This document shows, piece by piece, positions 10,110 through 56,800 of a DNA stretch of 64,000 bases. Where the stretch lies: assembly GCF_006345805.1 (NCBI RefSeq), contig NC_043006.1, forward strand, positions 28,272,001 through 28,336,000, given 5' to 3'. The DNA comes from Octopus sinensis (taxonomy: Eukaryota). Under the pieces are notes generated by a model that worked only from the letters and a program-made list of their open reading frames with translations, was not told the origin of the DNA and made no database searches. A program made the position numbers and the translations under genes. The number at the start of each line of letters is the position of its first letter. Within the stretch, counting starts at the first letter, position 1.

Positions 10110-10292
10110 ATGTATGGTGATCTTTATATTGGCATTGATGTAGGAACTGGAAGTGTAAGGGCAGCACTTTTCCAAAATAATGGAACACTGATTGCCAAAC
10201 ATGTCAGTAAAATCTCCATTCACAATCCACTACCAGATTATTATGAGCAGTCAACAGAGAACATTTGGGCTGCTGTTATTTGTTCTGTCAAG
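10110..10292 (+). CDS. FGGY: FGGY coding exon 1 ([20 protein letters not shown]...ICSVK)
   Basis: AAAATG start at 10110; phosphate-1 motif DVGTGSVRA; donor AAG|GTAGGG; upstream acceptor tttttaacag| at 10090 implies a non-coding upstream exon. Confidence 0.95.
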
Positions 10293-29800: not shown

Positions 29801-31163
29801 ACAAGTTACTTGGTGATCTCACTTGTTCAATTACAAAATCAGTCTGTGTTCTCATTACATATTATGCTCTTCTAATTCTGCATTATTATTATGAGTTTTT
29901 TTTCTTCAATTTTGTTGTCTTTTCTAGCCAAGTGTTTTCCCAACTCCTATGGCAAAGAAACTCACTATATACATTGATAAGACATTAAACTAAACACACC
30001 AGAAGTTATATGAAAAAAAATAATAATAAATAAAAATGAATTAAAATACATGAGTAGCAGTCGTTCTCACATTGACAATAGTACAGTTAAAACAATCTTT
30101 TGCACTTCTTGCAGGTATGGTGAGCCAGAGATTGTTCTCAAATAATTTTCAGTGCTTCAGTGCTCTGACTCCTTGTCTGTCTGGAAGTCAAAGTCCCAGA
30201 GGATCTTTTCCTTCTCATTTTCGTCCATTACCTTTTCTGGTATATGTTGATTCTAAGCACCTGTTATCTCATATCCACATTTACGGCATAGTAGCCAGTG
30301 AAGGTTTTGATCTACCTTGTCGTGTCTGCACTTGTACTCTTTCTATGCAAGACTTTCACTAGCTCTAACAATGTGAATCATGCTTTCAACCTTCTTCCCA
30401 CACATTCTACAGAGGTTTGTTGCATATGTGTTTTATATATCCCTTTTCCCTTAGTTGGTATTCAATGCCTGATCCTGGGCAACGAAGATTAGGCTTTCAG
30501 TCTTCTTTTTAGGGTCACCTTTGCTGAGTCATGTCATGATGCTTCTTGACCTTTTAAGTTGTTAGTTTCGCGGTGGAACTGACCATGCAATTCTATGCAG
30601 AATAGTGTTTCTTCTCTTTCATTGGCTATTCACAATCAGAATTCATTAGTACTCTCTATTCTATTGGTAAAATCCTTCTGCCTTAGCAAATTATTATTAT
30701 TATTATTATTATCATCATTATTTTTCTTTTTATTTCAGGTTTTGTTGTAACTCTTTGTGTCTTGCATGTGTAGCGGGCTTGCTTCCTGCAGTCTATAGTA
30801 TCATGCTCTCTGTTCTTTTCAACTATCTAATACTTTCCTGATTATCCTCCTCCTCCTCCTCCTCCTTCTTCTTCTTCTTCTTCTTCTTCTTCTTCTTCTT
30901 CTTCTTCTTCTTCTTCTTCTTCTTGAAGTGAACTGGTGGAATCCTTAGCATACTGGGTAAAATGCTTAGCAACATTCCGTCTGTGTTTACATTCTGAGAT
31001 CAAATTCCACTGAGATCAACTTTGTCTTTCATCTTTGTGGGGTCAATGAAAGAAGTACCAGTGAAACACTGTGGTTGATATCAACTTCTTTCTCTCCTCA
31101 AAAATTACTTGCCCTGTGCCAAAATTTGAAAACATTATTATTTTTATCATCATCATCATCATT

Positions 31164-31214
<51 letters not shown>

Positions 31215-32471
31215 GTGCTGTGGGCACGTATTATTATTATTATTATTGTGCTGTGGGCACGTATTATTATTATTATTATTATGCTGTGGGCACGTAACAA
31301 ACACCATCCAATCGTGGCCGTTCGCCAGCCTCGTCTGGCACCTGTGTCGGTGGCACATAAAAAACACCATCCGAGCGTGGCTGTTCGCCAGCCTCGTCTG
31401 GCACCTGTGTCGGTGGCACATAAAAAACACCATCCGAGCGTGGCCGTTCGCCAGCCTCGTCTGGCACCTGTGTCGGTGGCACATAAAAAACACCATCCGA
31501 GCGTGGCCGTTCGCCAGCCTCGTCTGGCACCTGTGTCGGTGGCACATAAAATCACCCACTACACTCTCGGAGTGGTTGGCGTTAGGAAGGGCATCCAGCT
31601 GTAGAAACACTGCCAGATCTGACTGGCCTGGTGCGGCCTTTGGGCTTCCCAGATCCCAGTTGAACCGTCCAACCCATGCTAGCATGGAAAGCGGACGTTA
31701 AACGATGATGATGATGATGATGATTATGGTTGGCAGGATCATTAGCACTCCAGGAAAAATGCTTAGCGGTATTTCATCTATCTTTGAAGTCTATGTTCAA
31801 ATTCCACTGAGTTCAACTTTATCTTTCATTCTTTCAGGGTCGATAAATTAAGTACCAGTGAAAGACTGGGTTCGATGTAATCAACTAGTCCCCTCCCCCC
31901 AAATTTCAGGCTTAGTGCCTTTAATAGAAAGGATTATTATTATTATTATCATTATTATTATTATTATTATTATGATTATGATTATTATTATGATGATGAT
32001 GATGATGATGATGGCAGAATTGTTGGTATGCCAGACAAAATACTTAAGTAGCATTTCGTTCAATATGTTCTGAGATCAAATTCTGCCAAGACTGACTTTG
32101 CCTTTCATCCTTTAAGGATTGTTGAAATAAGTACCAGTTGAGCACCGGGGTTGATGTAATAAACTATCCCCAGCTCCCATAATTTCAGGCCTTGTGCCTA
32201 TAGGCCTATAGTTGAAAGAATTATTATAAATTTTCTCTTATTCTTTTTTCTCGTCTATCATTACCATAATTGTTGAACTCAGAATTTCGGTTTCATTTGT
32301 TTGTTTTTTGTGTGAAATGTCAATTATCATGTTGTCAGTTATCATATAATCAATTATCATGTCTAATGCTTCTTCAAATGAATTCCTGTATTTTCTAGCT
32401 TGACCATATTGTGAAGAATCATGCTGCATTTCCAGCTATTAAAGAAAAAGCAGAAAAGAGGTAAGGATTAA

Positions 32472-32502
<31 letters not shown>

Positions 32503-35500
32503 TGTATGTGTGTGTGTGTGTGTGTGTGTATGTGTGTATATATGTATGTATGTATGTATGTACATACGTATGTATGTACGTATGTACATACATACATGCA
32601 TACATACAATATGTGTGTGTGTACTCCCATCCACCTTTATATAATGTGGGATTGTCATGTAGCTTGTCTATAGCAAGACATCTCTGCTTGTCCCTGGTAT
32701 AAAGCCACCTCTCCATCCTCTCAGATATTCCCACTCACCCTTCTTGCAACCTCACAAGTGTCAGTAGTGTGACAAAAGTACCCAGTGCACACTGTAAAGT
32801 GGTTGGTGTTAGGAACGGCATCCAGCAATAGAAACCATCCCAAAGCTGACATGGAGCATGATACAGCCTTGCAGCTCACTAGATCCTTTTTAAACCATCC
32901 AACCCATGCCAGTAAGGAATATAGATGATTTATGATGATGATGATAAATGATGATAGTAAATATGCATGTTTATATAAGAAAATTTAGACTTCCATTATA
33001 TGTATCATTATCATCACCATCTTCATCTAACATTCATTTTCTATGCTGGTATGGGTTGGATGGCCAGAAAGCTGCACAAGACTCCAATTGTCTGTTTTGG
33101 CATGGTATCTATGGCTGGATGCTCTTCCTAATACCAACCACTCTACAGAGTGTACTGGGTGCTTTTTATATAGCATCAGCATGAGTGCTTTGTTTGTGGC
33201 ATCAGCATGGGTATTTTATATGTGACACCAGCATGGGTGCTTTTTTACGTGGCTCCAGCATGGGCATAGCACTAGTACAGTGTGTGTGTACATAATACAT
33301 ATATAGTGTTAGATAATCATAAGTATGCATGTATATATAAGAAAATATGTACTTAACACACTCTGATACTTTGTCACAACCTCAATATCTTCATTACAGA
33401 TATTCTTAGCCACGTTTCTCCTCTATAGCAAGATACCTGTGCCTGTCCCTCTGCCATACTGTGTTTAATGAGTTTAATTCCTCTGTATCTAACAGTAACA
33501 CTATAAAACATTCGCTGGTATCACAGAAGCTTGTACCATGAATCTGTGGCAAGACAATTCCTCAACATCATGCTTTCTAATGATGTGTGAGTCATTTAGT
33601 GTGATGTACCAATGATAATTTTAAAACCACTGCTGTTTCAATTGCATACACTGAGTTTTTTCAACAGCCCAGCAAGTTTTTTGCAATATCTGAATATTTT
33701 ATTCATCGTTTCCTATATATTAAGGCATACATTGCATTTAAACTAGTGACATTCTGGTGCATGGTATTGAAAAGCTTCAGCATTTATCGCTCTCATGAGT
33801 CACTGCGGCAATTATCTTCATCTCACTTTGATAGATATTGTATTTTTAACACATCAAGTATATGAAGAGATTTCATTTCAGACAATTTCACAGCATTATG
33901 TTTTCAGTCAGTGTTTATACATTTGGAATGATACACAGATTTTAATTCATGCTGTTTCATGTGCATACATCAGTTTGTAGGAAAACATACATTGGAAATG
34001 TAGCTTCTTAATTACAGACATGAATATATATATATATGTGTGTGAGAGTATGTGTGTGTGTGTGTGTGCATGCACTTATATGTGTGTTTTGTGAACAAAA
34101 GAAAGTAGCACTCAATGCATTTGGCAAGAGTTACACATATTTTTAATGAAAATTTGATTCAGCTCCACATGACTTGTTTCTTGGGCATGTTGAACAACCC
34201 CATCTCATCAGATGCTAGGAGAGTGAAAGTTTTGACAGAAATTCAGGATGGCTTCTGGATGTTAAGCCTCTATTGGTCAACTCAGGTCATGTAGTATAAA
34301 AACTATGAAAGGGACACCAACTATTTCCTTTATTTTCAAGGTCACATGTTTGGACATGATGTTGGCAGCTAGCTGGCACCACTTTGACAGCAGGTTGTGC
34401 AATAACGTATTCAGTGATAGCAGTTCCTTGTAATGGATACCACATTATGGTGGGGTGGGATGTTGGCGCTAGTCAATAGCTCAATTGTTGTGCAGTGGTG
34501 TATGAACACATCAGCAACATCAGTCTTTACATAAGGGTAACTAGATTTAATGGAGTCAGGTTATAATTGAGGTTGATCGACCAATATGGATTAGTTGTAG
34601 TCTATATGGGCAGTAAAGATTAAATATTCTGCCCTTGTGTGTGGGACAGCTAGGCCTAGTTGGGGTATATCTGGGTTGTCAGCAGTCAGTGGTTTGAAGT
34701 TCATTAAGAGGGAATACCTTGGGTGGCAACAATAAAATAGTTTGTTCTTCCTGTTAATGGATACTGCAGGTTAGAGGAGTGTATGTAGTCTCCTGCAGGG
34801 ACAGAATTAGCAGTTGTGAGTGCCAGATTTGTAAAGTCCCTGATGATGAAACTCTACTTGAAGTTATTTTAATGGTTATGGATTCTCCATATGAAGTGGG
34901 ACTTGTTGATTACATCAACTACAGTGCTCAGCTGGTACTTATTTTATGGACATCAAAAGAATGAAAGGCAAAGTTCACTTGGCAGAATTCAAACTCAGAA
35001 CGTAAAAAGGGACAAAATACCACTAAGCATCTTGTCCAGCATGCTGACAATCCTACCCAATCAATAGTAACAATAAGGGTTTCAAATTTTGGCACAAGGC
35101 AAGCAGTTTGATGGGGAAGGTTAAGTTGATTAAATCAACCTCAATGCTCAACTGGTACTTATTTTATTGACCTTGAAAGGATGAAAGACAAAGTTCACCC
35201 TGCTGGAATTTGAACTCAGATCATAAAAAGAGATGAAATGACACTAAGCATTTTGCCCGGCATGCTAATGATTCTGCCACCTCAATAATGTTAATTCTTT
35301 TTTAATTGACCACAAGAGCCCTGAAGAATATTTAGGACAATACACTGGCAAAAAAACTGGGGATTTACAGGGTATTTAGGCTAAATTTGATATTTTTTAT
35401 GTCCCCCTTTTTTCAGGAACTGCTTGATGTATTGGTGAACAGTCAATGGTGTTGGAGAGTATAAAGATTAAAGTTGTAGTTGAGAAAAAGTTAGCTGACA

Positions 35501-38429
35501 TGGAGGGCTGGAAGCTATCTAAATATTAGAAAAGAGTTACATGTATCATAATATTTGTCCTTGGTATCAAAATGCCAGCATCATTTCTGCTACTCAATGC
35601 TCTGTGAACACTGTAAAGGCTGTAAGATGTAACATGGACAGCTGCAATTGAGACTATGAAGCTGTAGCCAGCAGGAAGGGCCACGGCAGGTGTTCTGGCT
35701 GTTTAATTCATTAAACAGCTGCAAAACAAGGTGATGGCAGATCCAATAAAGGAATTAAGGATCAAAAGAGATGGATGTTGAAGTTGCCTCTATAAAGCTA
35801 ACCCTGAGGACCTTTGCTACCACTCATATAAGAGGCATGAGCAAAATGCCCCCTGTCCAATGGATGGTGCTGAGTTGTCAAACATTTAAACCAAATTTTC
35901 TCAAAACAACTTGTCCGACCATCCCATAGGCCTCCCCTTTGAGAAACACTGATTTAACCTAAATTTGAGACACCAGTAAAAGAAGAAATAAAGATAGGCA
36001 TTTTTTCTATTCCAAAGAAAAACGATTTTATTCACACAAATATGCAACCGAGGAGTTTAAAGTACCAGTAATGATAAGGCTGTTGACTTGGAGAACGGCT
36101 TTATCGATCGCATTCTCACCTGGAATCGATTTTTGTAATTTTTTCAAGACTTATACACGCCCTGAGACCGTCAGTATCTACATATCAAATTTGAGCGCAA
36201 TCGGATGGCGGATGCCCGAGATCCTAGAAAACACACACACAGACACACAGAATGGATTTTATATAGATAAGGGACAAATTCTGACAGCCAAAGCCAAGGA
36301 GAATCACTTGATGAAGGCAAAGAAGCTCCTGATCTAGCTGTTAAACCAGAGATGATCTAGTTCTTCCCAGATGAAAAAAACTACTGCCACGACCAGTCGC
36401 AACACACCCAGAACAGGTGGTTTGCCTATAATCCATGTGATGTCACATGTATCATGCAAATCAAGTTCCCCCAAATTGTGATGACCTTTGGGTGTGTCTG
36501 CATCTATGAACAGGGCCTTAGACTCAATTGAGATAGCTATATGAAACTGCTGGAGATCGTGGAGGAATGCATGTGCCATGTTCTGGAGCTGTCTTTAGGT
36601 AGTGGTTGAAGCTGAGGACAGCTACTTTGAGTACCTCCCAGTCATAATCTAGTTGAAGTCTTTTGATTCTTTAAAAAATACCCTTATTTTTTTATGGGAT
36701 ATTGTGTTTTCTTTTCCTTTTATGCAAACTGTCAAATTTTAGCACAGACACCCTGTACATAGAAAACATAAACAATAAAAAGTCATAACAATTAACAGAA
36801 TAATTTCTGCTAATTTCTGCCACCCTGTCTACCAGGTATACCATGGCAAGTTCTTCTCTCTCCTTAGTCCCCACCCTTCAGGTTCTAGTTCAGAATAGGC
36901 CCATTCATTCAAGCTGTCCTTGCCACATCCATCCACCTTTCAATGAATTTACTGGAGTAGAAATACATTCCTCTCAGCCCTCACCTTCCTTTTTAAATGT
37001 AATTTAAAGAAGTTGATGAAGTCTTGACCAACGAGAAAATTGTTTGCCTTCAGTGCTTTCAGTCTCATCCACCACACAACCTCTTTTGCTATAGCTGTCA
37101 GACACAGAAAAACTGCCTGCTCTTTCTGTTCAAAAGAAGGTGACAGAGCAGTCTTTTCAATGAAGTTGGCCAATTGTCAAATTGATCCTACATGTGATAT
37201 CAGCTGTTCAACATAACTCCACAGATTATCAATGCTCATCGCTGTACAAGCGCATGCAGGACAGTGTCAGTGCTCTGCACTCCTCATAATCAAGTGAGGC
37301 CTGAAGCCACTATTTTGCCTGTAGAGTTTATCCCACATTGGCAATGCCTCCCAGTAGCACTGCCAGGGTAGGGATTTTAGGAAATTATCCATGGGCCCTG
37401 ACTTGAAAGTCTTCCACTAGGCCAGCGATTTTAGGGGTAGTCAATTACACTGACCCTAGTGCTCAACTGGGATTTATTCTATTGTCCCCAAAGAGATGAA
37501 AGGCAAATTCAAACTCGGTAGTATTTGAACTCAGAACATAAAGCTGGAAGAAATGCTGCTAAGAATTTTGTCAGCTCACCACTTAAATAATAATAATAAT
37601 CCTTTGTACTAAAGGCACAAGGCCTGAAATTTTGGGGAAGGGCCTAGACAATTACATCAATACCAGTGTTTCACTGGTACTTAATTTATTGACCCTGAAA
37701 AGATGAAAGGCAAAGTCAACCTTAGCAGAATATAATACTAATAATAAGGGTTTCAAATTTTGCCACAAGGGCAGAAATTTGGAGGGAGGGGATAATTCAA
37801 TTATATTGACCCCAGTGTTTCACTGATATTTAATTTATTTGCCCCAAAAGGATAAAAGGCAAGCCGACCTTGGCAGAATTTGAACTCAGAGCACTATGAC
37901 AGACAAAATACTGCTAAGTATATTGCCTGTCATGCTGACAATTCTGCCAGCTCGCTGCAACAACAACAACAACAACAATAATAATAATAATAACAACAAC
38001 AACAAAAACACCAGGACTTACAAACACATATAACATACAGAAAATTGCACTACTAGGCACTGCACGCATCCTACGCAGAACACTTTCCATACAATAACCA
38101 TCAGAGCATCACAACAAATCACAGCACATACCCAAGGCACACAGAGCTGCGCTCGGTAGTGAAGTGAAAGCACGCTATAAAAATAAAACTACTGAATAAT
38201 AATAATAATAATAATAATGGTTTCAAATTTAGGCACAAGGCCAGCAAATTCAGGGGAGGAAATAAGTCGATTGCATTGACTCCAGTGTTCAAATGGTACT
38301 TATTTTATCAACCTCAAAAAGATGAGAGGCCAAGTTGACCCCTAAGAACTCAGAATGTAAAGACAGCTGAATGTAAATGCCACAAAGCATTTTGCTTGAC
38401 GTGCTAACGATTCTGTCTGCTCGCAGCCC

Positions 38430-38475
<46 letters not shown>

Positions 38476-41400
38476 TCTCTAATTACTTTGGCACAAGGCC
38501 GGAAATTTTGAGGGTTGGGTGGATCTTTGTACTTGACTGGTATTTTATTGACACCAGAAGAATGAAAGGTAAATTTCTCCTTCGGCACAATTTGAAATTA
38601 GAACAGGCAGTAAAATGTTAGAACAAATACCACAAGGCACTTTGTCCAACGCACGAACGATTTTGCCATTGCACTGTCAATAGGCTCCATTAGGCTTCCT
38701 TGCTTTGTCTTTATAACTATTAGGAATTGTTTTCGTTTCGTTTCTAAAACATTTATTGATTATCACTACCAAATTAACGCCTTTGACATTGCATGCAGTG
38801 TCATTGCTTTTCCGGTAATTTGTCATAGAGCAATTGATAACGTCACAATTGTAATTAACAATTGCAAATACTGCTTTTGTGTGTGTGTATGTGTGCGCGC
38901 GCGTGTGTGTGTGTTACGAATATGAATGTGTGAGTATAGGAGTATAGTTGTATACGCGCGTGCATATCAGTCATATTTCAGTATTGTTTCATATGTCACT
39001 GCCGAAAGTTATTATTCGAAGCCAAGTTAACAAACCTATGTTTTTAAACACACGTTATACCTTATAAACAATTCCAAGTTTTATTTAGAAAATGAATAGA
39101 TCTTTACATGGCGACGAGCCATCGAAACATCCCTCTAAATCTAACTTGACCCAACGTGAAGCCAACTACTTGTATCCCTCTAATCTTCCAGGCACAGTTT
39201 TAAATGACGATGAAATTGGTCAGGAAGCAGACCATTCTCACCAACAAAGATGTTCCGATATGAATTTAGATTCTAGAAATAAAAGACCGAAAATAGAATC
39301 TCAGTATTCAAATATGGATGTCATCGAAATACCGTTTCCTTTTTTACAGCGAGGAGCGAAATTAAAATTACAGAAACCAATTTTGAAAAAAAACATGTTA
39401 GTCTATCCGTTGTTATATATTAGCGTACCTTTCAGAGGTTCCGAGAGGCCTGAAAATGTACGCATTCAGAGACCCCGCCATAGGAAAAAAAGCACTACTG
39501 AGAAAACATTAAGATCTTTCCGAAGTCGATTTTACGCTGGTTTAAGAAGGTTTTACTCATCTTTCATATCGTGTGTGACCGACAATTTTACTTTAGACGA
39601 TCTTGACAGCACTCAAGACGTTTCCGACTCGAAAAGAAGACGTGATTACAGAAGCAGTAATTTAAGACATAGATACTAATATAATACCATAAGAATTTGG
39701 TGTGAATATTTCGTACTTAACAACGAACATTTGTTTCATTTCTTTGAACTATTATTTATTTCTTTAAGTCATAGAATCGATATCGATACAAATACAAAAG
39801 GATACATGAAAGAAAGAAGTGAACTTTCGATTCTCATATGTTATATTCTTATTTATATACATCTGTTTTACGTTTAATGCTAGATTAGTCGTAATAATAA
39901 AAAAAGTATTCCCGATATGGGGTCACAAAATTTGTGTATATTTAATGGTTAAGTAGTCGATTATCTGGACCCTAACGCTCAATGCTTGGCTTGTATTTAT
40001 TTTATCAATCCCAGAGGATGTGATAGATAAATTTATATCAGAGGGATTTGAACTCAGAACGTAAAAAGGTGTGATTGAATACTTCGGCTCTACTCTTTCT
40101 ACCATTCCAGCCTTGACCATCCCCCATCTTTGAGGGGTATCTAGTTTTAACCAATGTGTCTTTACGTTTTTTTAATGGCACGGTGAAACTAAGGGAATGC
40201 TCGAGTGCTTTTTCTAGCAGGATGATTGACCGAGGGTCTTCCCACTGTTGTAGAAGTTTGTTTTATTAATTTTAAAATGAAGTACATGAAACAGCTGCTG
40301 AAATCTTAAAGTGAATCTGAAGTTGGAATGGAATGTCAAATTTCAGATTCTTATTGAATAATGCAATAAAAATTAATTGCATATTCGTGTAACCCCGAAA
40401 AGACCCATCGAGGGTCTTTGGCGTGTCGCTACAACCCCCAAAGCCATTCTTATTTATACAATCATCTCATTGCTCGCATTTACAACCAGGTAGATTGTTT
40501 AACTCCATTCAACCGAATCAATGTAACTTCATTCAACTTTTACACGCACAGAATCGCCAACGCATGGAATAAATTACCTGCACCTGTTATTAACCGCCAG
40601 AACACAGCATCCTTTAAAAATTCCACGCTTCTCGAAATTCAGCAACTTTTCCTCTTTGTGGATCTTGCTGATCACGTTTCTGTGTTTCATTCTGTCTATT
40701 GTGCACGTACTTCTAGCTTTCATTGCTGTCTTTGTATGACTTCTGTCTGTTCTCTGTTCCATCTTTTAATCTTTCCTGACGAGTTGTGGTGCATCTTAGC
40801 ATGTATACAATCTCAATATTATTACTTATCAGCTTCATACAACCGAGACTGTCACTTCATTCCATTCGATTTTTTAGTTGATTTATTTCGATAAGAATAA
40901 AACTTATGATTGAGAGTCCGTGATGAATGCCAGAATTGACGATTGTCAGCAGCTCCTTTGTCGGTTTTATAACTAAAATATTTTTCAAGGAAGTACGATA
41001 TTACGTTGGTGATAGGATACAAACTGGTACTTGGAGTAATCATTCCCATACTAGATTTAATTCGTCACCCGGTTTAAAGCCACCACATGATCGTTGGATG
41101 TTTTTCACAGATTTACAATCTGTAACTAGCATTTAGTTTTTTCGCATGAGGAGAACTTGTTCCTGCCAGTTACAGAGACTCAAAAAAGGATCATAGTTCT
41201 TGCCCTAAGCCACTTATTTAAAAAAATGCTTGTAGGCTTGCAGTAGTAAAAATTTAGTCGTCTGCAAATGACAATGAAAATTTAAAGAAACATTGCAGTT
41301 TTGTCTCATATTTAGTAAAGGTTGTTCTTTTCTAAATGAATTAATTTTTACTAATAAAGTTATTTTACAAATTATTGATACATTCGTCATCTTTAAAGTT

Positions 41401-44289
41401 AAGTTTTTAGTTTGAAAAAAAAAATTGCAAATATATGCCAATGTAAGTGTGACAGTAAAAATTTGTAACGGTAGAAGTTAAATTTTTGTATAACGATAAT
41501 ATGAGACATCGATAGTTGATATACAGCAGGATGGATGTAATCAGTTTGTAAGGACTGGTTCTTCGTTTCTTCCTTTCATCATCCTGTTCGCAATATGTTC
41601 ACGCCCTATGCCAAGTTCTTCCTACCAAGAATATCATCTCTATGGAATCCCCTCATATATTTCTGCTGCAGACTCACTGGTTTCGGAGGACATCTGGAGG
41701 TCATAGATACATCTCCTTCCTTGACCAATTCTATAGAAAAGAAATTAGTTCACCCTTTGATTCAGAATGTTTGTCACTAAAATGTTTGGCTTTCTTACAG
41801 CGTTATCTACATTTCAAAGTCAGTACCAGTTTTGCACGTCAACAGAAGGTGACTTTTTGAGAAATTGTAAAGCTTTCGTTCTTATATATAATGGTTTATA
41901 ATTTAGGCTCAAGGTAGGCAATTTTGATCGAGGGAGGTGAGTTAAATCGGCCCTAGTATTTGACTAGTACTTTATTTTTGTTGACTCTGGAGGAGTGAAA
42001 GGCAAAATTGATTGGAATTCAGATCAGAGAAGACCACAACGAACACCACAAGGCATTTTGTCCACCACTTTTACTAAATATTAAAAATGGATCTAAGTTT
42101 TATCTCTATTGTCAACTTGAAAAGCTATCATTGCTACAAGGTGAAACAAACCATGTGGTTCGTAAGCCAGCTACTTACCACACAGCCACTCCTACGAGGA
42201 ATGAACCTCTAGAAAGGTTCTAACTACGATCACCTGTTGGTCTCTCAACAGCCATGTTATCTCCTTGGTGGCTTTCTTCAGATGTTTGGTTTTCAAACCA
42301 ATCTTTTGCAGGAAATACCATATTGATCATGCTGGGTAGTCGCAGCAACCTACTTCAAATGGAATGAGGCTGCATTTCATCTTTTGACATCAAAGGTTGT
42401 AATAAAAGTAGATATCTCTTAATGTACGCCTCTTATTTTACATAATCTGTGACATATGAAATATTCTATAAGATGGTCGAAGATTCGAGCAAAGTATTGG
42501 CAGAGTCGTTAGAGCACCTGGAAAATGCTTTCCAGTATTTCATTTGATTCTTTACATTTTCTGTTCAAATCCCTGTGAGGTCAGCTTTATCTTTCACCCT
42601 TTCGGGGTCGACCTGTCTAGTACTGGAGTCAATGTAACCGACTAGCCCCCTCCTCCAAAAATTGCTGACCTTTTGCCAAAATTTGAAATAACAAGGTGGC
42701 GAACGAGCAGAACACTTAGCGCACCAGACAAAATGCTTCGCTGCATTTTTTCGACCGCTATGATCAAATTCCGTCGAGGTTGACTTGCCCTCTCTATGCC
42801 AATGAAATAAGTACCAGTTGAATTATGGGGTCGATGTAATCCTAAAATTACTGGCCTGTGCCTGAAATGGAAACCATTTTTATTATTAAAGTTAGTATAT
42901 TATAATAATACATTATTATATTATTACTATTAAAAGTCATATAGTCTCGTGGCGCGTAACTTAGTGGTTAGGGTGTTGGACTCACGATCGCAAGACTGTG
43001 ATTTCAATTCCTGGACTGGACGATGCGTTGTGTTCTTGAGCAAACCACTTCACGTTGTTCCACTCCACTCAGCTGTAGAAATGAGTGGCACTAATGGAGG
43101 CGCGTTGCTTAGTGGTTAGGGTGTTGGATTCACTTCAGTATGATTGTGGTTTTGATCCCTGGACCGGGCGATCCGTTGTGTTCTTGAGCAAAACACTTCA
43201 TTTCAAGTTGCTTTGGTTCCCTCAGCTGTAGACATGAGTTTAGCCTGGAGAGGGATGGTACCCCACCAGGCTTTCTCGCCCTAGATACGCTGTAGCGTTC
43301 CACCCCCCCCCCCCAAGGAGTTAAGGGACATGTCAATATAGTCTCATGAAGGAAATAGCCGTTCAGCGAAACAAATTACAAATCTATACAAGTAGTTTTG
43401 TAGAACCATTTCCACACATCTCGTACGAACCGTATTAAGGTGTCTAGGGACATCAATGTTTTTCAAAATGTAAATTGCGAATAGCCACCTTGATAATTCT
43501 CACTTCATCATCTTTGGAATCAGTCAATATTTCCTTTGGTGTTCTGTATAAGACTGACAAGTTAACTTGAGTTTTTAACCCTCGGCGATGGAGTAATGGG
43601 TCACTGAGGAAGATTAATCAAATCTGAAACCATTGATAATATGATTCCATCTTGCTTGCCGTAGCGAGCTTGTCTCTTTTGTCAGTTGTACTCTCACGTG
43701 GCTAAGAATTGTCTTGACTCGTATTTCTAGCAATGTTGGTGCTGACTAGAACATTCGGTTACTTTAGTGACGAGTAGTTGCCTTTCGGTTGTAAATGGCG
43801 AATAGTCAATAATGTAGGTAGGTAGGTAGGTAGGTAGGTAGGTAGGTAGGTAGGTAGGTAGGTAGGTAGGTAGGTAGGTAGGTAGGTAGGTAGGAGGTAG
43901 GTAGGTAGGTAGGTAGGTAGGTAGGTAGGTAGGTAGGTAGGTAGGTAGGTAGGTAGGTAGGTAGGTAGGTAGGTAGGTAGGTAGGTAGGTAGGTAGGTAG
44001 GTAGGTAGGTAGGTAGGTAGGTAGGTAGGTAGTAGGTAGGTAGGTAGGTAGGTAGGTAGGTAGGTAGGTAGGTAGGTAGGTAGGTAGGTAGGTAGTAGGT
44101 AGGTAGGTAGGTAGGTAGGTAGGTAGGTAGGTGGTAGGTAGGTAGGTAGGTAGGTAGGTAGGTAGGTAGGTAGGTAGGTAGGTAGGTAGGTAGGTAGGTA
44201 GGTAGGTAGGTAGGTAGGTAGGTAGGTAGGTAGGTAGGTAGGTAGGTAGGTAGGTAGGTAGGTAGGTAGGTAGGTAGGTAGGTAGGTAG

Positions 44290-44358
<69 letters not shown>

Positions 44359-47300
44359 AGTATGTATGTATGTATGTATGTATGTATGTATGTATGTATG
44401 TATGTTGTATGTATGTACGTACGTACGTAGTACGTACGTATGTATGTACGTATGTATGTATGTACGTACGTATGTATCTTTAGCTGGGCTAAAAAGTCAC
44501 ATTCGATCACAGCACTAGTAACAGTTAAGCTTCGTGCAATGGCCATACTCGATAACGAGGGGGCAGCCATAAATATATGTACGTACGTATGTACGTATGT
44601 ATGTATGTACGTACGTATGTATGTACGTACGTATGTATGTATGTATGTACGTATGTATGTACGTATGTATGTACGTGCGTGCGAGCGAGCGTGCGTACGT
44701 ATTTGTTCTCCACCACCGCTTGACAACCGGTGCTGGTGTGTTTACGACCCCGTAACATTAGCGGTTCGGTCAAAGAGAAGGATAGAATAAGTTCTAGGCT
44801 TTAAGAAATAAGTCCTAAGGTGAATTTGTTCAACTAAAACCCTTCAAGGCGGTACCCCAGCATGGCCGCAGCCATGTAGAAACAAAAGTGCATTTTGCAC
44901 CACAAAAGCCAATATGAAAGTTTCTCTCATAAAGTTTGTTTTTATAGAACACCCACATTTAAGTGGGGGATAAATACTACCTCACAGAACATTTAATCCA
45001 GTTACAGGCAACCTGTGGCCTGCACGACTTTGTGAATGACCAGCATAATGAAAAATTATCATGAATCTTTTTAATGCGAGCAATGAGATTGCTAGATTGA
45101 TGAACCATGTGTCATATGGTTCACTTCTCAAAAAAAGGTTGCCCATGCCTGCTCCAACCAGTCACTCAACCCACTAAAAATACAGCCAAATCTCCATTCA
45201 CTGACCTCTACTATCCTAACAAGAAAAGGACTTATTGGACAATGTAGGGATCTTTTCGATTTGAATGGCAGTTTTTAACATAATTTCTAGGTAACTAAAA
45301 AATTTTAAACTTCGTATACTAGTAGAATGTGTTTATAAAACATCATTTTCTCTTGGCTTTCTTGAGAAAATTCTGTAGTTTATAACATATTTCGTCTTTA
45401 ATTTCTTGCATTTCGGCAATTTCAACCAATCAATGACTGTCTATTGAGGTGAAAGCATTCTGTGCCCTATGAATATGTCCCTCATTTAAGAAACGGGATA
45501 GGGCAATCCCAGACTCCGAATCAGTGTGTGACTTGGGAAGCCCCAAGAATAATTATGCAACATTACATGTGCATATTACCAAGTTGGTAATACTGTGTAG
45601 GGGAGTAGCTGGATGGATTCTGAGATCATTCAGAACCAGGAAAAGGGATACCATGCTATTCCTGTGGAGAACAATTTTTGTTCTCAGTTGTCTGAATTAC
45701 ATCTCCCAATCGTGGTCACTGCAGAGCGTCAAGCTGATGGCAAAACTTGAGGCAAGCCAACACCACTATACTAAGAAGATTCTTTTCTACTCTAGGCACA
45801 AGGCTCAAAATTTTGGGGGAGGGGTCCAGCCAATTAGATCAATCCCTGTATGCAACTGGTACTTAATTTACCGACCCGGAAAGGATGAAAGGCAAAGTCA
45901 ATCTCAGTGGAATTTGAACTCAGAACATAAAGACAGACAAAATACTGCTAAGCATTTCGCCCGGCATGCTAATGTTTCTACCAGCTCGCCGCCTTAACTA
46001 TACTAAGAAGATTGAGCAACAGATGAGTTACTGGGAGAGGCTAAGAGAACTGAAGCTCTACCCCTTTGAGAGAGGGTATGAAAGATATACAATGATATAC
46101 AAATGGAAGATTTTGGAAGATCTAGTTCCCAAATTTGAAACTGAAAGCTATATCAACTGGACAGTACTGACTGATACCAAAAATCCTGTTTTCTCCATCT
46201 AGGATTAGGACACCATACTGTAACAGCTTGGGTTTCAAAGGTTCACAACTATTCAATATTCTACTAAACAGACTCAGAGATTTGTGAGGTATAAATGCGA
46301 AGGTCTTTAAAGAATGCCTGAGATACCAGATAAGCCCACATGGCAGCAGGAGACACAAAGGAGAGTAGCTCTGCCCAACTTGCTACTTCACCTGAAACAA
46401 TACAGGAAATAAATCTAATCACATTGAAAGGTGGTGCCCCAAAATGTCCTCAGTTTCTGGCTGAAACTAATAAAACAATAACTGTTTTCCAATTGTATGT
46501 AAATATTTTTGAGATGAAGTGGTTTAAGCCACATGTGTTGTACATGTGAATTTAACCATTAAAGAGAGAGAATCCCCTCTCGGTAACTTTTGTGTGTGAG
46601 TTGTTGTTCATATCTCCATGGGCTTTACCTAGCACCAAACAATTCAATGAAGTAAAACACGATCCCATAGTCTGCTGACTTTTTGAATATTGCCGGACCA
46701 TCCTGTCCATGCGAACATAGAAAACAAACTCAAAATTATCATGACTATGATATGGTATCAAAACTGAAAAAGAATATAATTTTCTTTCATAAACAAAAAA
46801 ATCTCAAATTTTGTGGAGAAGGAACAACCGATTATATGACTTTAGTAATTGACTAGCATTTTATTTTATCAACAACCCTCATAAGGATGAATGACAAAGT
46901 TGTCCTTGTCAAAATTTCAACTCAGAATGTAAAGAGCCCGAAAAATACCACAAATACCACAAATTATTTTGTGGCACTAAATCGATTTTGAGAATCCACT
47001 TGGTGAAAAAATGAGAAACATGCAAAAGTGAAAAATGTAAAACAGAAATGATGTAAGAAATAGAAACTTAAGGCAGACCAATACATCAAGCAACAGGAAA
47101 GGGGATAGTGAATTTATTAGTAGGAGAGGGAAAAGGGTAAGTTGGTGATGATGATAATAATGTTTTTATTCTTTTTGTAGATCAGTGCATTCTTTCAGCA
47201 TTCTAAATGAAGCACTTGAAGATTTAAGACAGCAAAATAAACTATCATCTGTAGCTTTGCTCACATTGAAGTTACATATGTGGCCAGATTTCCATGGTAA

Positions 47301-47843
47301 TCGTTCACCACTTGCAGATCCTACACTACGAGGAATGGTATGTTTTATTCTTTTACACGTTTCAGCCTTAAGGCTGTGGCCATGCTGGAGCACTGCCAGT
47401 GAATACATTTTTAGTATTTTTTTTTTGTGTGATAACCACTTGAAAGTGGTTTTATAACTATACAAGTGAAGTTGTACTGTTAGTAAAGACACTTAATTCT
47501 CAATGAGCTAGTGAATCAATCAGAAGGGGAAAGATACATTAATCCAGAGCATGAAGAGAGAAGGAGGAGTTTGCTTCTATTTGCTGGGCACTCCTTTAAA
47601 AGAAAAAAAAAAAGGGAAGCTCTACATCCTTGAAATTTGAATGAGCACCCTCCATCCTGGAGTCACAAAGTAGTTTTGTTCTACCTTGTCAAATTTCTCT
47701 TGGAGGCCCTGTTAACAAGCAGGGTTGTGTGGTAGAGAAGTTCATTTCCAAACCATGTGATTTCAGGTTCAGTCCCACAGTATCACGCCTTTGGAAATTG
47801 TCTTCTACTATAGCCGTGTGCTATATATATTCATATATGTATG

Positions 47844-50800: not shown

Positions 50801-53800
50801 AAGGAGCAGACATAAAAACAATTATGATGATGATGATTAATAATAAGAAAGTTTGATATTTTACTAAATCCTATTTTCATGTTTCAAAATTAATTAAAGC
50901 CCATAGGAAATGTATTTTGTTGTAAATATAGCCATGAAAGGGTTAAGATACTTTCTACACACAAATCTCTTATTTCAAAAATAACTCTCACTGAAATCTT
51001 ATTGCTTGGATTTTTGTTTTTCAGTATGGCACCAAACACATCATCCAAGAACTTGAAAAATATGGGCACAATATCAATGTGGTGCATATGTGTGGAGGTC
51101 TGAGGAATAATTCCTTGCTAGTGCAAACCTTTGCAGATGTTGTTGGTAAGTTTGCACACCACATTTGGCACCTCTTATGTCCAATTTTTCTCTCAACACA
51201 TTTGTACTTTATCGTGTATGCATGCTGACATTGCACATCTAGCAGGGCATGCTAGCTTCATTTCTTTCCAGTCTTCACATATCATCTGCATTTACAACCA
51301 TGTAGCATTAGGGTTCATAAACAAGCATGCCCTTCATTTCAAGAGATAAGCCTTTTGTTACCAAGAAAGTTAATTGCTCTCTGAACTTTCTCCAGCCAGT
51401 TCTTACTCTAGCAACTATACTCTCAGTATGTCCTCCTCCACTACTAATTACATCTCCTAGGTAACAGAAACTATCTGCTACCTCTGGGGATCTTCCTGGG
51501 CTTTCCAGAAAACCTATTTCCTATGCACTGTAAATGTTTATTTCACCTACACATCTGCCACAAACTAAGTCTGCATTCTCTGTTAATCTTCCTCTGATTC
51601 CACTGCACTTCTTAAGTGTCCACCGTTTGCACTGAGTACACTGTATGGAATTTATACCATTCCTCTTCCACATATCAGACTTTTATTTGAATGGATTAGC
51701 ATACTGTCTGTTTTCCTGCAAACTGGAACTTTTTTTATCTTTGCTAAGTTAACATTAAGACCCTTTGATGACAGGTTTTGCTTCGACACATGGAATTTTA
51801 GTTCTAATTCTGCTACAGCTTCAGGTGTAAGATCAAGATCATCATCATGGAAGAGTTCTTATGGGAAGCCAATCTTAAATTCCTTTGGTATGGCCTGGGG
51901 GACAATGATAAATAGGAGGGAACTGATAATCAAAACCCTGATGAACTACCTGCACACTAAATTCATCACTGAACTCATTGCTACTTTCACTTTACTGACA
52001 GCATCCCTGTACATGGCTTGAATGGCCCTCAAAAGCCATTCATCTACTCTTAGTTTCTGCAGGAGCCCTGTCAAAGGTTTTTCTCCAAGTCAACAAATGC
52101 CAAGTACAGTGGTTTATTTTTAATTAAATACTTCTAAAGTTGCTTTATAATAGGTAAAAGCACCAACCGATTGTGACCGTTTGTCAACCTGCTCTGGCCC
52201 CTGTGCCGGTGGCATGTAAAAAACACCCACTAAACTCACAGAGTGGTTGGCGTTAGGAAGAGCATCCAGCTGTAGAAACACTGCCAAATCAGACTGGAGC
52301 CTGGTGCAGCCTCCATGGCTTACCAGACCCTGGTCAAACTGTCCAACCCATGCTAGCATGGAAAACGGACGTTAAATGATGATCATTGTGATAATGAAAG
52401 CATTAATGGCACTTCCTCCTGACATGAATCCAAACTGCATCTCATCTACATTACTATTTTTTGTAATTGAACTATGACTCTTTCTGTGACTTTGATGAAC
52501 TGGTCCAGCAATTTGATACATCTGTAATTACTACTCTGTAAGGCATCTCCTTTACCTTTTTAAAGGCATCTCCTTTACCTCCGATGCTGCTATATCAGTT
52601 GCTGAGTATAATACTTTCCTGTATTATGTGATTGACTTTATGGATGACTAGGTTGTATCCCACTCTGCTAGATATTTGAAGTATCTTAGCAGTGATTCGT
52701 GATGGACTAAGGGCTTTCCCTTTCTTTATATCCTTAACTGTAACTGTCTATCACACTGGTGTCAATAAGAATGGCTGGGTCCTCTCCTGGGTTCATAGTA
52801 GGAAGACTGTCTTTCTTCCATTTATTTTTCACTTTGGCAAATGATGATAGTGATGATGATGATGGTGGTGGTGGTGGTGGCATTGTGGCAGCTGAAGCAA
52901 TGATGACAACAACAATGATGTATCCCTCATATAAAGAATGAGCTGATTTCTAGCAAAGTGACAAAGTTCTGTCACCCAGTGTTACCAATTTAGCATATTT
53001 TATGCTAGATCTAACAGTTTTTTTCAGCATTTAGCAGGGGAAATAGCAAGCTTAAAATTTTCTTTAGCATTTTTTAGCAATTTATTCTGATCATGACATT
53101 TCCAACATAGTTACCCCCTTTTTCTTCTTTTTACTCCTTTTCTACTTTCGTTAAAGTATCTTACAGCCAAATTTTAGTACTATTGGCTATTGTTGAATTT
53201 TTCTTTCACTTACATGAAACTTCAAATGAAAGTTATCCAAAGGAAATTTATCAAGTCATGAACTTTTCCAGCTCCCTCCCCACCACTTGGATACAGAGCG
53301 CTGCTTGGGGGGGGGGGAGATAATTCATGTCAGCACCTGAACTCACTACACAATAATGTAAATATGTTACAAAGAATGAAGGCATGGAAATTCGTCCTAA
53401 CAGTGCTTTATTCTGTAGTGATGAGTTTTTATCATGATAAGTTGACTGATTTACTTTCAGTTTGACTGTTTGAAAATAGGCCTGTGTTTTTTCATGCTAG
53501 CATAAGAATTGTTCACGACAAAATGAAAGAATTGTTAACAGCAAATGAAAGAATTGTTAGCTGCAAACTGATAAGTTGTATTTTCAATTTTATATTTTTA
53601 TTAATCATTCAATTTATTTCTTGCTTCCCACTACATTATAATGAGCAAAGAAAAAACAAAGTTGTACCAGTAAGAATTCCGAAAGGAATGGCTTAAGATG
53701 CCAGCATTTACTAAGTGGTTGTGTGAAGTCCCTAGTGACCAATCTAAAGCACATTGCAGAGATTGTAGATGGAATATGTTGGCAAAATATTCTCTTTTAG

Positions 53801-56800
53801 TAAGCCACTGTGAAGGAAAGAAACATAAGGCATCAACTCCACAGCAAATGATTCCTCTTACCAATTTTATTAAAGCCAAAAATGATAAGACATCTATGCT
53901 TGAAGCAAATTTAGCAATGTTTATTTGTTGCCATTCATCATTTGATAGCTGTGATCGCTTAATAGAGTTATGTAAGAATTATATGTCTGATAGTGATATT
54001 ATGTCCAAAGTGAAGTTGCATCATACAAAATGTGCAAATATTGTGAGAAATGTTGTAGCTCCATATTTTGATGGAGATTTGATTTCTGATATAAGAGATA
54101 GAAAATTTAGCCTTTTATTAGATGAATCCAAATGATATATTGATAAACAAGTTGTTAGGAATTGTCATCATATGTTACAGTGACACTCACAAAGAAGTGA
54201 TACATACATATCTCAATATGTGATGCAAATGGCATTGTAGGTGCCTTAAAAATTGAATTAGCGAAAAAGAAATTAGATATAAAAAATTTACTGGGTATAG
54301 GAACTGACAATGCTAGAGTAATGACAGGAGTCAACAATGGTGTTTTCCAGAAATAACTTGTGCTGAATGCTTGCCCATTAATTTAGAATTTTTAGTATCC
54401 GAAACCTATAAATGGTTCTCTCATTCTTCAACAAGACAAAGTGCCTACAAACAACTTTACCTTGCTATCAATGATAAAGAGCCTTTGAAGATTGTGAATT
54501 CTTGTACAACTAGGTGGCTGTCAACAGAATCAGCTGTAAATAGAATTTTAAGCCAATGATTTGAATTGCAAACTCACTTCCAAACTACAACTGCAAAAGA
54601 AAAATGCTTTACAGCACAAATGTTACTTGAAATGCCTTGTGATTCTAGGAATGAACTTTACCTTTTATTTGTGCATCCAATTTTAAAACATGTTCAGAAA
54701 GTGAATAAACTGTTTGAATCAAACACTGTCGACAAAACAAAATTACTTGAAGATCTTTCAAATTTGATCAAATCTGTTGCTAATATGATAGTGTTGCCAA
54801 CATGTAGAATTGATCTTCTTGATCCTGATGCTTCTATTGAAAAATTTCTGGATCCTAAACCAAATTTAGGCTACAGGTTTGAGAGAAAGATTATCAAGAA
54901 GACTAACAGCCACTGAAGAAAATAATATTCACAAAAGAGCACAACAAAGGCAGAGTAAAAATTACTCTGCCTTTATAAAGAGCTCAAGCACCATTTGCCA
55001 GAAAATATTAATATACTGAGAAATATCAAATGTTTTTCAGTAGAGAATATTTTGCAGCATTTCAAAGAGCCAATTTTACCTGTCTTAGAAGTAATGCATT
55101 TAAATGAAGAAAAAATTGCTTCAATTGAAATTCAGTTTAATAACATTCATTTAGTTAAATGGACAAATACATCTAATACTGAGGCATTCTGGCTGGAAGT
55201 CTTGGAATATAAAGATGCTACTGGAGGAAATCCTTTTAGAGATGTTGCAAATTTTGCCATTAATCTACTGACATTGCCAAACTCAACTGCAGAAGTTGAA
55301 TGGTTGTTCAGTAGTATGGGTGTAATCAAATCAAAATTGAAAAACAAAATGTATCTTCCATAGGAAGATCAATACTGTCTATAAGATATGGCAAATCTTT
55401 GAAAAATTTTGATATTCCAAAACACATAATTAACAAGATTGGGACCTTGAATGTATACAGAAGTCAAGACCTAGGCACTGCAGTTGAAAGTGATCAAATC
55501 AGCGAAATTCAAGAAATTATTTCTCAATGCTGAATATAATTAAAGAAAGTAAATAAAAATTAAGCATTAGCATTTTTTTGGTATTTTTCTACTGAAATTT
55601 AGCATAAAATTGTGATTTTAAGTTGGCAATACTGCTGTCACCAGAGAGTTAACCACCATGAAGGCAATGGCAAGTGATCAAGACCTTTGGCAATATACTA
55701 TGTTTGAGAAGACCTGCCAAGCCAAGTGAGATCGTAGCTGTGGCCAATGCCAGTGTCATGTAACTGGCTCTTTAAAAGCACCGTTCAAACATTGGGTGAT
55801 ATGCTGTCCTTGTGAAGACCTTTCGGGCCAAGTGAAATCACAATCATGGCTAAAGTCAGTGCCATCTAATTGGCACCCATGCTGGTGACACATAAAAAGC
55901 ACCATTCAAGTGTTGGGTCTCATGGAGGCAGGTGACAGACCTTTGGCGATATACCATGCAGTGTAGACCTGTCATGCCAAGTGAGACCATAGTTGTGGCC
56001 AGTGGTACGTAAAAACCACCCACTACACTTTTGGAATGGTTGGCATTAGGAAGGGCATCCAGCCGTAGAAGCCATGCCAAATCAGATTGGAACCTGGTGC
56101 ATCTCCCCGGCTTACCAGTTTTCAGTTAAACTGTCCAACCCTTGCCAGCATGGAAAACGGATGTTAAATGATGATGATGATGACAACATTGAACTGTTAC
56201 TAGTGAACTTTCTTTGGCTGAAAATGCCAGCCTTTCATGATTACTGCTTAAGACATTCACTAACATAACCTAATAGTTTGTATGCATGTGTGTTAGCTAT
56301 CACTTTATCATTGTTTCAAGGCAGCCAAGGAAGAATGGTTATTAGAAACTAGGAATTCTTATTCAACACAATTAATTACCAAGTGTTACAATTTCAAGAA
56401 CTAACAGTTTATCGAATTTTCTGAAACAAAGCAAAGAATTATTAAAATACATTCTTCTGACTGATACTAACAGTTCTTTGAGAAAAAGATGTTCATTAAA
56501 ATAATATGAATTATTTGTAATGTTCTTAAGTCTTTGACAGTAACATGTATCTTTTTTGTGCAGGAATACCATTTGTTCTTCCTGATATGGATGAATCAGT
56601 GTTGCTAGGAGCAGCTATTCTTGGTGCATTTGCCAGTGGAAATTACTCTAGCATTCAGGTTAGTGACCAAGTAGTTTGTTAAAAATCTACTTATAGATTG
56701 TTGTCATTTGAAGCCATACTGATGTGTGATTATTCTTGAATATTTATATGCTTCTGTAACTTATGTACCCTGATGAAATACAGATCTTTCACCAGTTCCG

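Follow-up and report, generated by a model that had tools for sequence, protein, structure and literature searches.

A probable octopod protein-coding gene nested in sense orientation within intron 9 of FGGY

We have analyzed a 64,000 nucleotide (nt) stretch of the Octopus sinensis genome (contig NC_043006.1, positions 28,272,001 to 28,336,000; hereafter the window) that carries the gene FGGY. Over 61,985 nt its letters are 100% identical to the O. sinensis record CM016868.1. Within the ninth intron of FGGY lies an open reading frame (ORF) of 195 amino acids (aa), at positions 39092-39679 of the window; all positions below are those of the window unless a comparison locus is named. The ORF is very probably the single coding exon of a translated and selected protein-coding gene, nested in FGGY intron 9 in the same orientation as its host. 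We base this reading on orthologous frames in other octopods, on conservation that is specific to one frame, on the omega values obtained under a codon model, and on a 3' untranslated region (3'UTR) and poly(A) signal that have been kept together with the frame. Four species share the frame, a length of 191-195 aa, a YAG|AAAATGA start, the 3'UTR and the AATAAA signal, all at a corresponding place in the intron.

The nested frame and its host gene

The host gene was spotted through the DxGTxSxR motif of FGGY exon 1, which, used as a query, led to an O. sinensis FGGY protein with 100% identity. tblastn with this protein places 15 coding exons in the window, all on the + strand. The FGGY loci of further species, among them loci of 67-75 kilobases (kb), were retrieved through their own FGGY proteins. 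The comparison loci cited here are an octopodid contig (L001; 1,325 nt, run SRR11869391), Argonauta hians (L002), the bivalve Pinctada (L004) and O. bimaculoides (L005). The nested unit and its immediate host context comprise the following features.

39092-39679 (stop included), + strand: nested ORF of 195 aa, from ATG to TAA (orthologs, codon model)
38990-39091, + strand: conserved 5' flank with CCTTATAAAC, then the acceptor-like TTTTATTTAG, AAA and the ATG (alignments)
39680-39901, + strand: conserved 3'UTR up to the poly(A) signal AATAAA at 39896-39901 (alignments)
32399-32460, + strand: FGGY exon 9, of the host gene (tblastn with FGGY isoform X3, 100% identity over aa 334-354)
32461-47180, + strand: FGGY intron 9, the host intron, 14.7 kb (exon mapping)
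47181-47376, + strand: FGGY exon 10, the usual splice partner of exon 9 (exon mapping, isoforms)

The original prediction, made from the letters of the window, had described an intact 195 aa ORF with an ATG start and a TAA stop, and it was found as described. The ORF had also been called the longest in the window that is not explained by FGGY, a transposable element (TE) or a repeat. This is correct: the three other ORFs of at least 195 aa correspond to a microsatellite, a remnant resembling a long interspersed nuclear element (LINE) and a tandem repeat. The G+C content of the window is 37%. In 200 dinucleotide-preserving shuffles of the window, the longest ORF per shuffle had a mean length of 124 aa and a maximum of at most 185 aa, and none reached 195 aa. 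Analytically, about 0.009 open runs of this length are expected per window. A chance origin of the 195 aa open frame is excluded.

FGGY intron 9 encloses the whole unit of ORF, 3'UTR and poly(A) signal (38990-39901), which lies on the host strand, and the intronic placement of the ORF is the same in O. bimaculoides and Argonauta. Several further elements named in the original prediction were recovered at this locus. The AAAATG start context is common to the ORF and to FGGY itself, whose start is at 10110; the acceptor-like ttttatttag (TTTTATTTAG, 39079-39088) ends 3 nt before the ATG, with AAA in between; and AATAAA follows 217 nt after the stop. The predicted reading of a splice from exon 9 into this site was likewise borne out. 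Exon 9 ends two bases into a codon (…AAG AG|gtaagg), and when joined to the AG at 39088 it reads AGA-AAA-TGA, with the nested ORF out of frame with FGGY. The end of exon 9 is AG| in Octopus and CG| in Argonauta, and together with AAAATGA it encodes R-K-stop in both lineages. Exon 9 is joined to exon 10 in 6 of 6 annotated FGGY isoforms (O. sinensis, O. vulgaris and O. bimaculoides), and no intron 9 sequence occurs in any of these six.

The conserved unit extends beyond the ORF on both sides. About 100 nt 5' of the ATG are highly conserved in the three octopodids; positions 39002-39061 are 100% identical to the octopodid contig L001, and further upstream the identity is 81-85%. Within this flank CCTTATAAAC (39060-39069) could, judged by its letters, be a branch point or a TATA-like element, and the conserved block reads equally well as a promoter and as a branch point with its acceptor. 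The four-species alignment indicates that Argonauta keeps TACC(T/A)TA(T/A)AA and YAG|AAAATGA, and the alignment of the 5' flank to Argonauta is weak (z=3.9). The YAG is found 3 nt before the ATG in three lineages (Octopus, the L001 octopodid and Argonauta). A donor-like GTGAGT had also been pointed out upstream; it is present at 38930-38935, but it is not conserved, the nearest available relative having GTGTGT and a 10-nt deletion.

On the 3' side, all four species have retained AATAAA. No other part is as well conserved between O. sinensis and O. bimaculoides as the 3'UTR, whose identity of 99.5% compares with 97.1% for the ORF and about 93-95% for ordinary intron sequence. The local alignment of the 3'UTR to Argonauta has a z score of 11.7, is matched by 0 of 300 shuffles, and extends to the shared AATAAA. 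A structured RNA or microRNA in the conserved 3'UTR or intron was considered and rejected: Rfam gave no match in the intron and no stable RNA fold was found in the 3'UTR (z=-0.17).

The transcript of the nested gene would end at the conserved poly(A) signal, at about 39,900-39,930. It would probably begin within intron 9, either at a start site there or with an upstream non-coding exon spliced to the AG at 39088. Upstream coding exons that would extend the ORF within intron 9 were looked for by tblastx and none was found. Another candidate, a cassette or poison exon of FGGY hidden within the ORF and formed by the acceptor-like tttccttttttacag (39336-39349) and a GTTAGT at 39397, was ruled out. 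The piece is 47 nt long and out of the FGGY frame, and the CAG of this strong acceptor-like site at 39349 is absent in Argonauta; the pyrimidine run of tttccttttttacag is there because of PFPF codons.

In the wider intron, O. bimaculoides (L005) has an additional stretch of about 3 kb opposite window positions 38162-38461, at a distance of 700-900 nt on the 5' side of the nested ORF. In this comparison the sequence 42062-43560 is essentially unalignable between the two species.

Orthologs and selection

Orthologs of the ORF were found in three other octopods. The O. bimaculoides ortholog is UniProt A0A0L8GWB1 ('Uncharacterized protein', 195 aa), with 96% aa identity, at L005 45822-46409. The second octopodid ortholog is a 194 aa ORF with 78% aa identity at L001 198-782. 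In Argonauta hians an intact ORF of 191 aa is located on the same strand within a 5.8-kb FGGY intron 9 (L002 21810-22385), with about 35% aa identity to the O. sinensis protein over 172 residues (tblastn E=1e-33). Each species has one copy of the ORF, and neither the window nor any of the retrieved loci contains a second. The original prediction recognized no family for the protein, and our searches agree with this. Among 5.8 billion protein clusters a word-index search returned two matches only, A0A0L8GWB1 and the L001 ORF, and a four-species profile run against the same clusters added nothing beyond the orthologs. When 1.84 billion representatives were scanned in full with HMMER, one match was obtained, which is an ortholog. 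No Pfam family was matched by the 195 aa protein, and the best hit of a sequence-profile search of the PDB had E=0.46. A literature search on FGGY plus octopus yielded nothing relevant, and searches for the run SRR11869391 turned up no paper.

The Pinctada FGGY locus contains no homolog anywhere, and intron 9 of this bivalve is about 445 nt long. So far, as judged by sequence similarity, the gene appears to be known only from incirrate octopods (Octopus, Argonauta); squid, cuttlefish, Vampyroteuthis and Nautilus lay outside the search. We infer that the gene arose, or diverged past recognition, after the split of cephalopods and bivalves. The claim that this is a lineage-specific nested gene in its own right is supported by the orthologous ORFs, the frame-specific conservation, the core omega of about 0.2 described below, the lack of relatives outside these species in our searches, and the lack of TE hallmarks. 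Four features of the encoded protein stand out when the orthologs are aligned.

39173-39193, + strand: N-terminal motif Y-P-x-x-x-P-G, aa 28-34 (four-species alignment)
39314-39430, + strand: constrained core, aa 75-113, with predicted short beta strands (alignment, codon model, AlphaFold2)
39470-39496, + strand: basic cluster, aa 127-135, just before the helix (alignment, motif scan)
39512-39595, + strand: predicted basic aromatic amphipathic helix, aa 141-168 (alignment, hydrophobic moment, AlphaFold2)

The frame is intact in 4 of 4 species. Between Octopus and Argonauta, strong collinear nucleotide alignments of intron 9 occur at two stretches only, and both are within the ORF; the remainder of the intron can no longer be aligned at this distance. 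By tblastx the ORF frame scores 142 bits over 153 codons, against 53 and 45 bits for other frames, and no other conserved coding piece was detected in intron 9. At least 257 nucleotide differences separate Octopus and Argonauta across the ORF, and 5.9% of the possible single changes in it would create a stop. On these figures the survival of the frame is not neutral; we estimate its neutral probability to be about 1e-7 or less. The protein alignment of Octopus and Argonauta contains a single gap, of 4 residues and in frame. The O. sinensis ORF has no insertions or deletions (indels) when compared with that of O. bimaculoides. Relative to the L001 octopodid it has one (3 nt, in frame), against 8 in the flanks of this pair.

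A four-species codon model was used to estimate omega, the ratio of nonsynonymous to synonymous substitution rates (dN/dS). For the whole ORF (195 codons) omega is 0.66 (p=0.024; here and below, the test is against omega=1). The core, aa 75-113 (39 codons), has an omega of 0.19 (p=2e-4), a value that is biased downward because the core was delimited by its conservation. The core plus the helix (67 codons) gives 0.38 (p=0.003), and the tails (128 codons) give 1.05 (p=0.82). The tests that are free of this bias are the whole-ORF omega and the survival of the frame to Argonauta. In the core, the Octopus and Argonauta sequences differ at 8, 5 and 17 sites in codon positions 1, 2 and 3, respectively, corresponding to a dN/dS of 0.2; relative to the L001 octopodid the O. 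sinensis core shows one aa change against an expectation of 8.2 (P=4e-4). When O. sinensis is compared with O. bimaculoides, the ORF has a dN/dS of 0.28-0.38 and a synonymous divergence (dS) of 0.05-0.07, which matches the divergence of the surrounding intron (about 5-7%). The original prediction had listed a disrupted frame in close relatives, together with a dN/dS near 1, as contrary evidence. This was not encountered: the frame is never broken, and across the tree as a whole dN/dS stays below 1. From the pattern of substitutions, the core and the basic amphipathic helix, about one-third of the protein, are under purifying selection. The tails change at a neutral-like rate and appear to be selected only to stay open, as is usual for disordered regions.

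Several observations weigh against the view that this is a translated, selected gene. Two-thirds of the protein, the tails with their omega of 1.05, looks neutral, and the core omega carries the bias just described. In the comparison of O. sinensis with the L001 octopodid dN/dS is 1.2-1.8 and the third-position excess is absent; frame survival in this pair alone has P=0.10, which is not significant. The recorded gene calls of O. sinensis, O. bimaculoides v2 and Argonauta contain no protein gene inside intron 9, and exact-protein look-ups for contigs, made with the O. sinensis, O. bimaculoides and Argonauta proteins, returned none. Even beyond the poly(A) signal the L001 contig remains collinear with the genome, and it is therefore not a demonstration of an mRNA.

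The protein of the L001 octopodid differs from that of O. sinensis by 41 aa, with the differences concentrated in the C-terminal tail (dN 0.176 versus dS 0.049). Amino acid change is strongly accelerated on this branch, which could be due to positive selection or to relaxed constraint.

Features of the predicted protein

The four orthologs are hydrophilic proteins of 22-23 kilodaltons (kDa), with an isoelectric point (pI) of 9.9-10.4 and a grand average of hydropathy of -0.8 to -1.1. None of the four has a membrane-spanning hydrophobic segment, and no hydrophobic N-terminal signal sequence was seen by eye. In the N-terminal motif the columns Y28, P29, P33 and G34 are invariant; the tail around it is fast-evolving and predicted to be disordered, with a predicted local distance difference test score (pLDDT) below 50. 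The core follows the pattern E-I-P-F-P…G-A-K-L-x-L-Q-K-P-I-L-K-x-N-M-L-V-Y-P-L-x-Y-I-x-x-P, and 26 of its 39 residues are identical in Octopus and Argonauta. In the helix region 14 of 28 residues are identical between these two, Cys161 is invariant, and the maximum hydrophobic moment of all four orthologs (0.55-0.58) is located here. Three basic clusters resembling nuclear localization signals had originally been described. The central one, aa 127-135, is conserved in the four species; the other two are not. A basophilic-kinase-type site, [RK][RK]x[ST], is present at aa 131-135 in all four orthologs.

Known docking motifs were compared by eye, and no strict conserved match was found to PP1 SILK/RVxF, the PCNA PIP box, calcineurin PxIxIT/LxVP, ERK FxFP, 14-3-3 mode 1 or calmodulin 1-8-14. 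AlphaFold2, run with the four-sequence alignment, predicts strands at aa 77-111 (pLDDT about 56-73) and a helix at aa 136-162. The model is poor overall (mean pLDDT 48.8). Foldseek against the PDB found no match with E <0.7 and no TM-score >0.16, and the model is too poor for this comparison to be meaningful.

Since the structure model is poor, our suggestion for the function of the protein is derived from sequence features, and it should be regarded as tentative and rather doubtful. The product (about 23 kDa, pI about 10 and mostly disordered) may be an intracellular adaptor or regulator. Its small beta-rich core would bind a partner, and its basic amphipathic helix would bind an acidic surface, such as a nucleic acid, a membrane or a calmodulin-like protein. 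Binding by the helix might be gated by phosphorylation at the [RK][RK]x[ST] site just upstream.

Alternative readings and relation to known systems

The alternative that fares best, which we nevertheless consider unlikely, is that the exon serves mainly as an alternative last exon at the 3' end of FGGY. Exon 9 would be spliced to the AG at 39088, the host frame would continue as R-K-stop, and intronic polyadenylation would occur at the AATAAA. FGGY would be truncated early in its C-terminal half, to 356 aa, and the same mRNA would carry the 195 aa ORF further downstream, where it would remain untranslated or be translated through re-initiation at the overlapping ATGA. The sense orientation within the host intron fits this proposal, as does the conserved poly(A) signal, yet intron 9 is used by 0 of the 6 annotated FGGY isoforms in three Octopus species. 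The acceptor-like YAG is exactly 3 nt before the ATG in Octopus, in the L001 octopodid and in Argonauta, and the exon 9 phase is common to both lineages, with AGA/CGA-AAA-TGA and the ATGA overlap kept; however, the polypyrimidine tract of Argonauta is weak, and AAA before the ATG with A after it is also a good start context in an AT-rich genome. It is also in line with a terminal FGGY exon that no conserved upstream exon, coding or non-coding, was found in intron 9. Such an exon would leave unexplained a frame of 191-195 codons and a core omega of 0.2 past the stop, unless the ORF is translated, and re-initiation after a long ORF, here of 355 codons, is very inefficient in eukaryotes.

A bolder proposal is that the ORF has no promoter of its own and is expressed from the FGGY pre-mRNA through the alternative last exon, so that a truncated sugar kinase and, after termination and re-initiation at the ATGA, the orphan protein may be made from one mRNA. 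If true, this would be a case of operon-like, host-coupled expression of a lineage-specific gene in an animal. A milder proposal is that a de novo gene may have been born in the intron, in the octopod or cephalopod ancestor, and have gained its constrained folded core later. We consider the two, taken jointly, to be quite improbable.

Very improbable is a conserved non-coding element, such as an intronic enhancer or an exon of a long non-coding RNA, of which the ORF would be an untranslated by-product. Such an element would account for flanks that are, in close species, as conserved as the ORF or more so (100% for the 5' block and 99.5% for the 3'UTR, against 97.1%), for a 94-nt stretch of the ORF that is also without synonymous change, for a dN/dS of 1 or more in one species pair, and for the lack of a protein gene in the reference annotations. 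It would not account for a frame that is intact in all four species, Argonauta included, for conservation that is frame-specific, for the third-position excess and omega of 0.19 in the core, or for indels that are absent or in frame in the ORF and numerous in the flanks; nor does the element belong to an Rfam family or show a stable fold.

Equally hard to credit is an origin from a TE or virus inserted into intron 9 of an octopod ancestor, with the ORF as its remnant or as a domesticated accessory frame: the intron is rich in fragments of LINEs and short interspersed nuclear elements (SINEs), the protein is basic like many nucleic-acid-binding TE or viral proteins, and the bivalve intron 9 of about 445 nt without an ORF implies that the sequence arrived or arose later, but the ORF is single-copy, neither the window nor the 67-75-kb loci containing another, the cluster and representative searches yield orthologs only, and the protein has no Pfam domain, TE domains included. 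Independent SINE-like copies and a (TG)n tract lie on either side of the unit, and no terminal inverted or long terminal repeats bound it; one 17-nt inverted match with 82% identity is probably due to chance. A match to a TE, a further outcome that would have told against the original prediction, was not seen.

The window and the comparison loci contain a number of other features. SINE-like direct copies at 37514-38513 and 39990-40066, which flank the conserved unit, share the motif ATTTGAACTCAGAAC, and relatives of these copies are scattered through Octopus and Argonauta introns. The longest ORF in the window (43806-44570, 254 aa) is due to a (GTAG)n microsatellite of about 120 units with 98% purity at 43814-44290, after which come (GTGT)n and (TATG)n tracts. 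An ORF of 214 aa on the - strand (19819-20463) has the C-terminal motifs …LSYEERL…WNKLP, and Pfam gave no match for it at E <0.01. From these motifs, we take it to be a remnant of the C-terminus of a LINE reverse transcriptase (ORF2). A fragment similar to it is found on the + strand at 40418-40894. Two copies of a repeat element (22733-22941 and 31289-31551) contain an internal tandem array of 62-63 nt units; the - strand pseudo-ORFs at these arrays, 22582-23070 (162 aa) and 31098-31685 (195 aa), have a common N-terminus. In FGGY intron 12, a 145 aa ORF on the + strand (53698-54135) has a Cys/His-rich N-terminus (…SHCEGKKH…) without a Pfam match, and may be the remnant of a zinc-finger-type transposase.

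Two observations concern FGGY itself. Upstream of the window, within the 5' part of the annotated FGGY range, a gene for a 558 aa leucine-rich-repeat protein is called in O. sinensis (locus L006, 2488-4164; 1,677 nt, apparently a single exon), which would be a second same-strand gene nested in FGGY. In Pinctada imbricata, FGGY intron 12 (L004 13364-14431) holds about 10 tandem exon-13-like pieces spaced by about 109 nt, with 59-62% aa identity to FGGY aa 467-495, upstream of the real exon 13.

With respect to its kind, the reading that we favor, a translated and selected nested gene, places this locus among the taxonomically restricted genes nested in introns. This is a known category, and established knowledge is not overturned. 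New are the conservation to Argonauta, the constrained core, the conserved 3'UTR and the absence from gene calls on record, as well as the conserved arrangement of a same-strand acceptor-like site and ATGA relative to FGGY exon 9. For annotation, this is a conserved gene missed in two Octopus reference genomes and in Argonauta, of a sort that synteny-anchored intron comparison recovers. A single-copy, clade-restricted protein with a small constrained module in fast disordered tails also offers a tractable case for the origin and function of lineage-specific genes, and same-strand nesting with an acceptor-like site and a poly(A) signal raises a testable question of interference or coupling with FGGY.

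The closest known relative is A0A0L8GWB1, the direct ortholog at the same place in O. bimaculoides FGGY intron 9; it is an unnamed computational model without family, domain or function, and is absent from the v2 gene calls. Like other nested genes of metazoans, the ORF is contained in a single intron of a larger host gene unrelated to it and has its own reading frame, 3'UTR and poly(A) signal. Most nested genes lie opposite to the host strand; this ORF, in contrast, lies on it and has an acceptor-like AG 3 nt before the ATG. A sense acceptor-like site and a conserved AATAAA are features shared with isoforms made by intronic polyadenylation and alternative last exons, and their use would truncate FGGY. 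Unlike in such isoforms, only two codons would be added to the host frame before a stop, and the conserved coding signal resides in an independent ORF. As with taxonomically restricted genes of cephalopods (for context, PMC6386654 and PMC6158316), the ORF is conserved within a clade and had no match beyond it in our searches, and its product is short and largely disordered, with fast tails. Its core is constrained across the whole distance between Octopus and Argonauta, so that it is not a very young de novo ORF.

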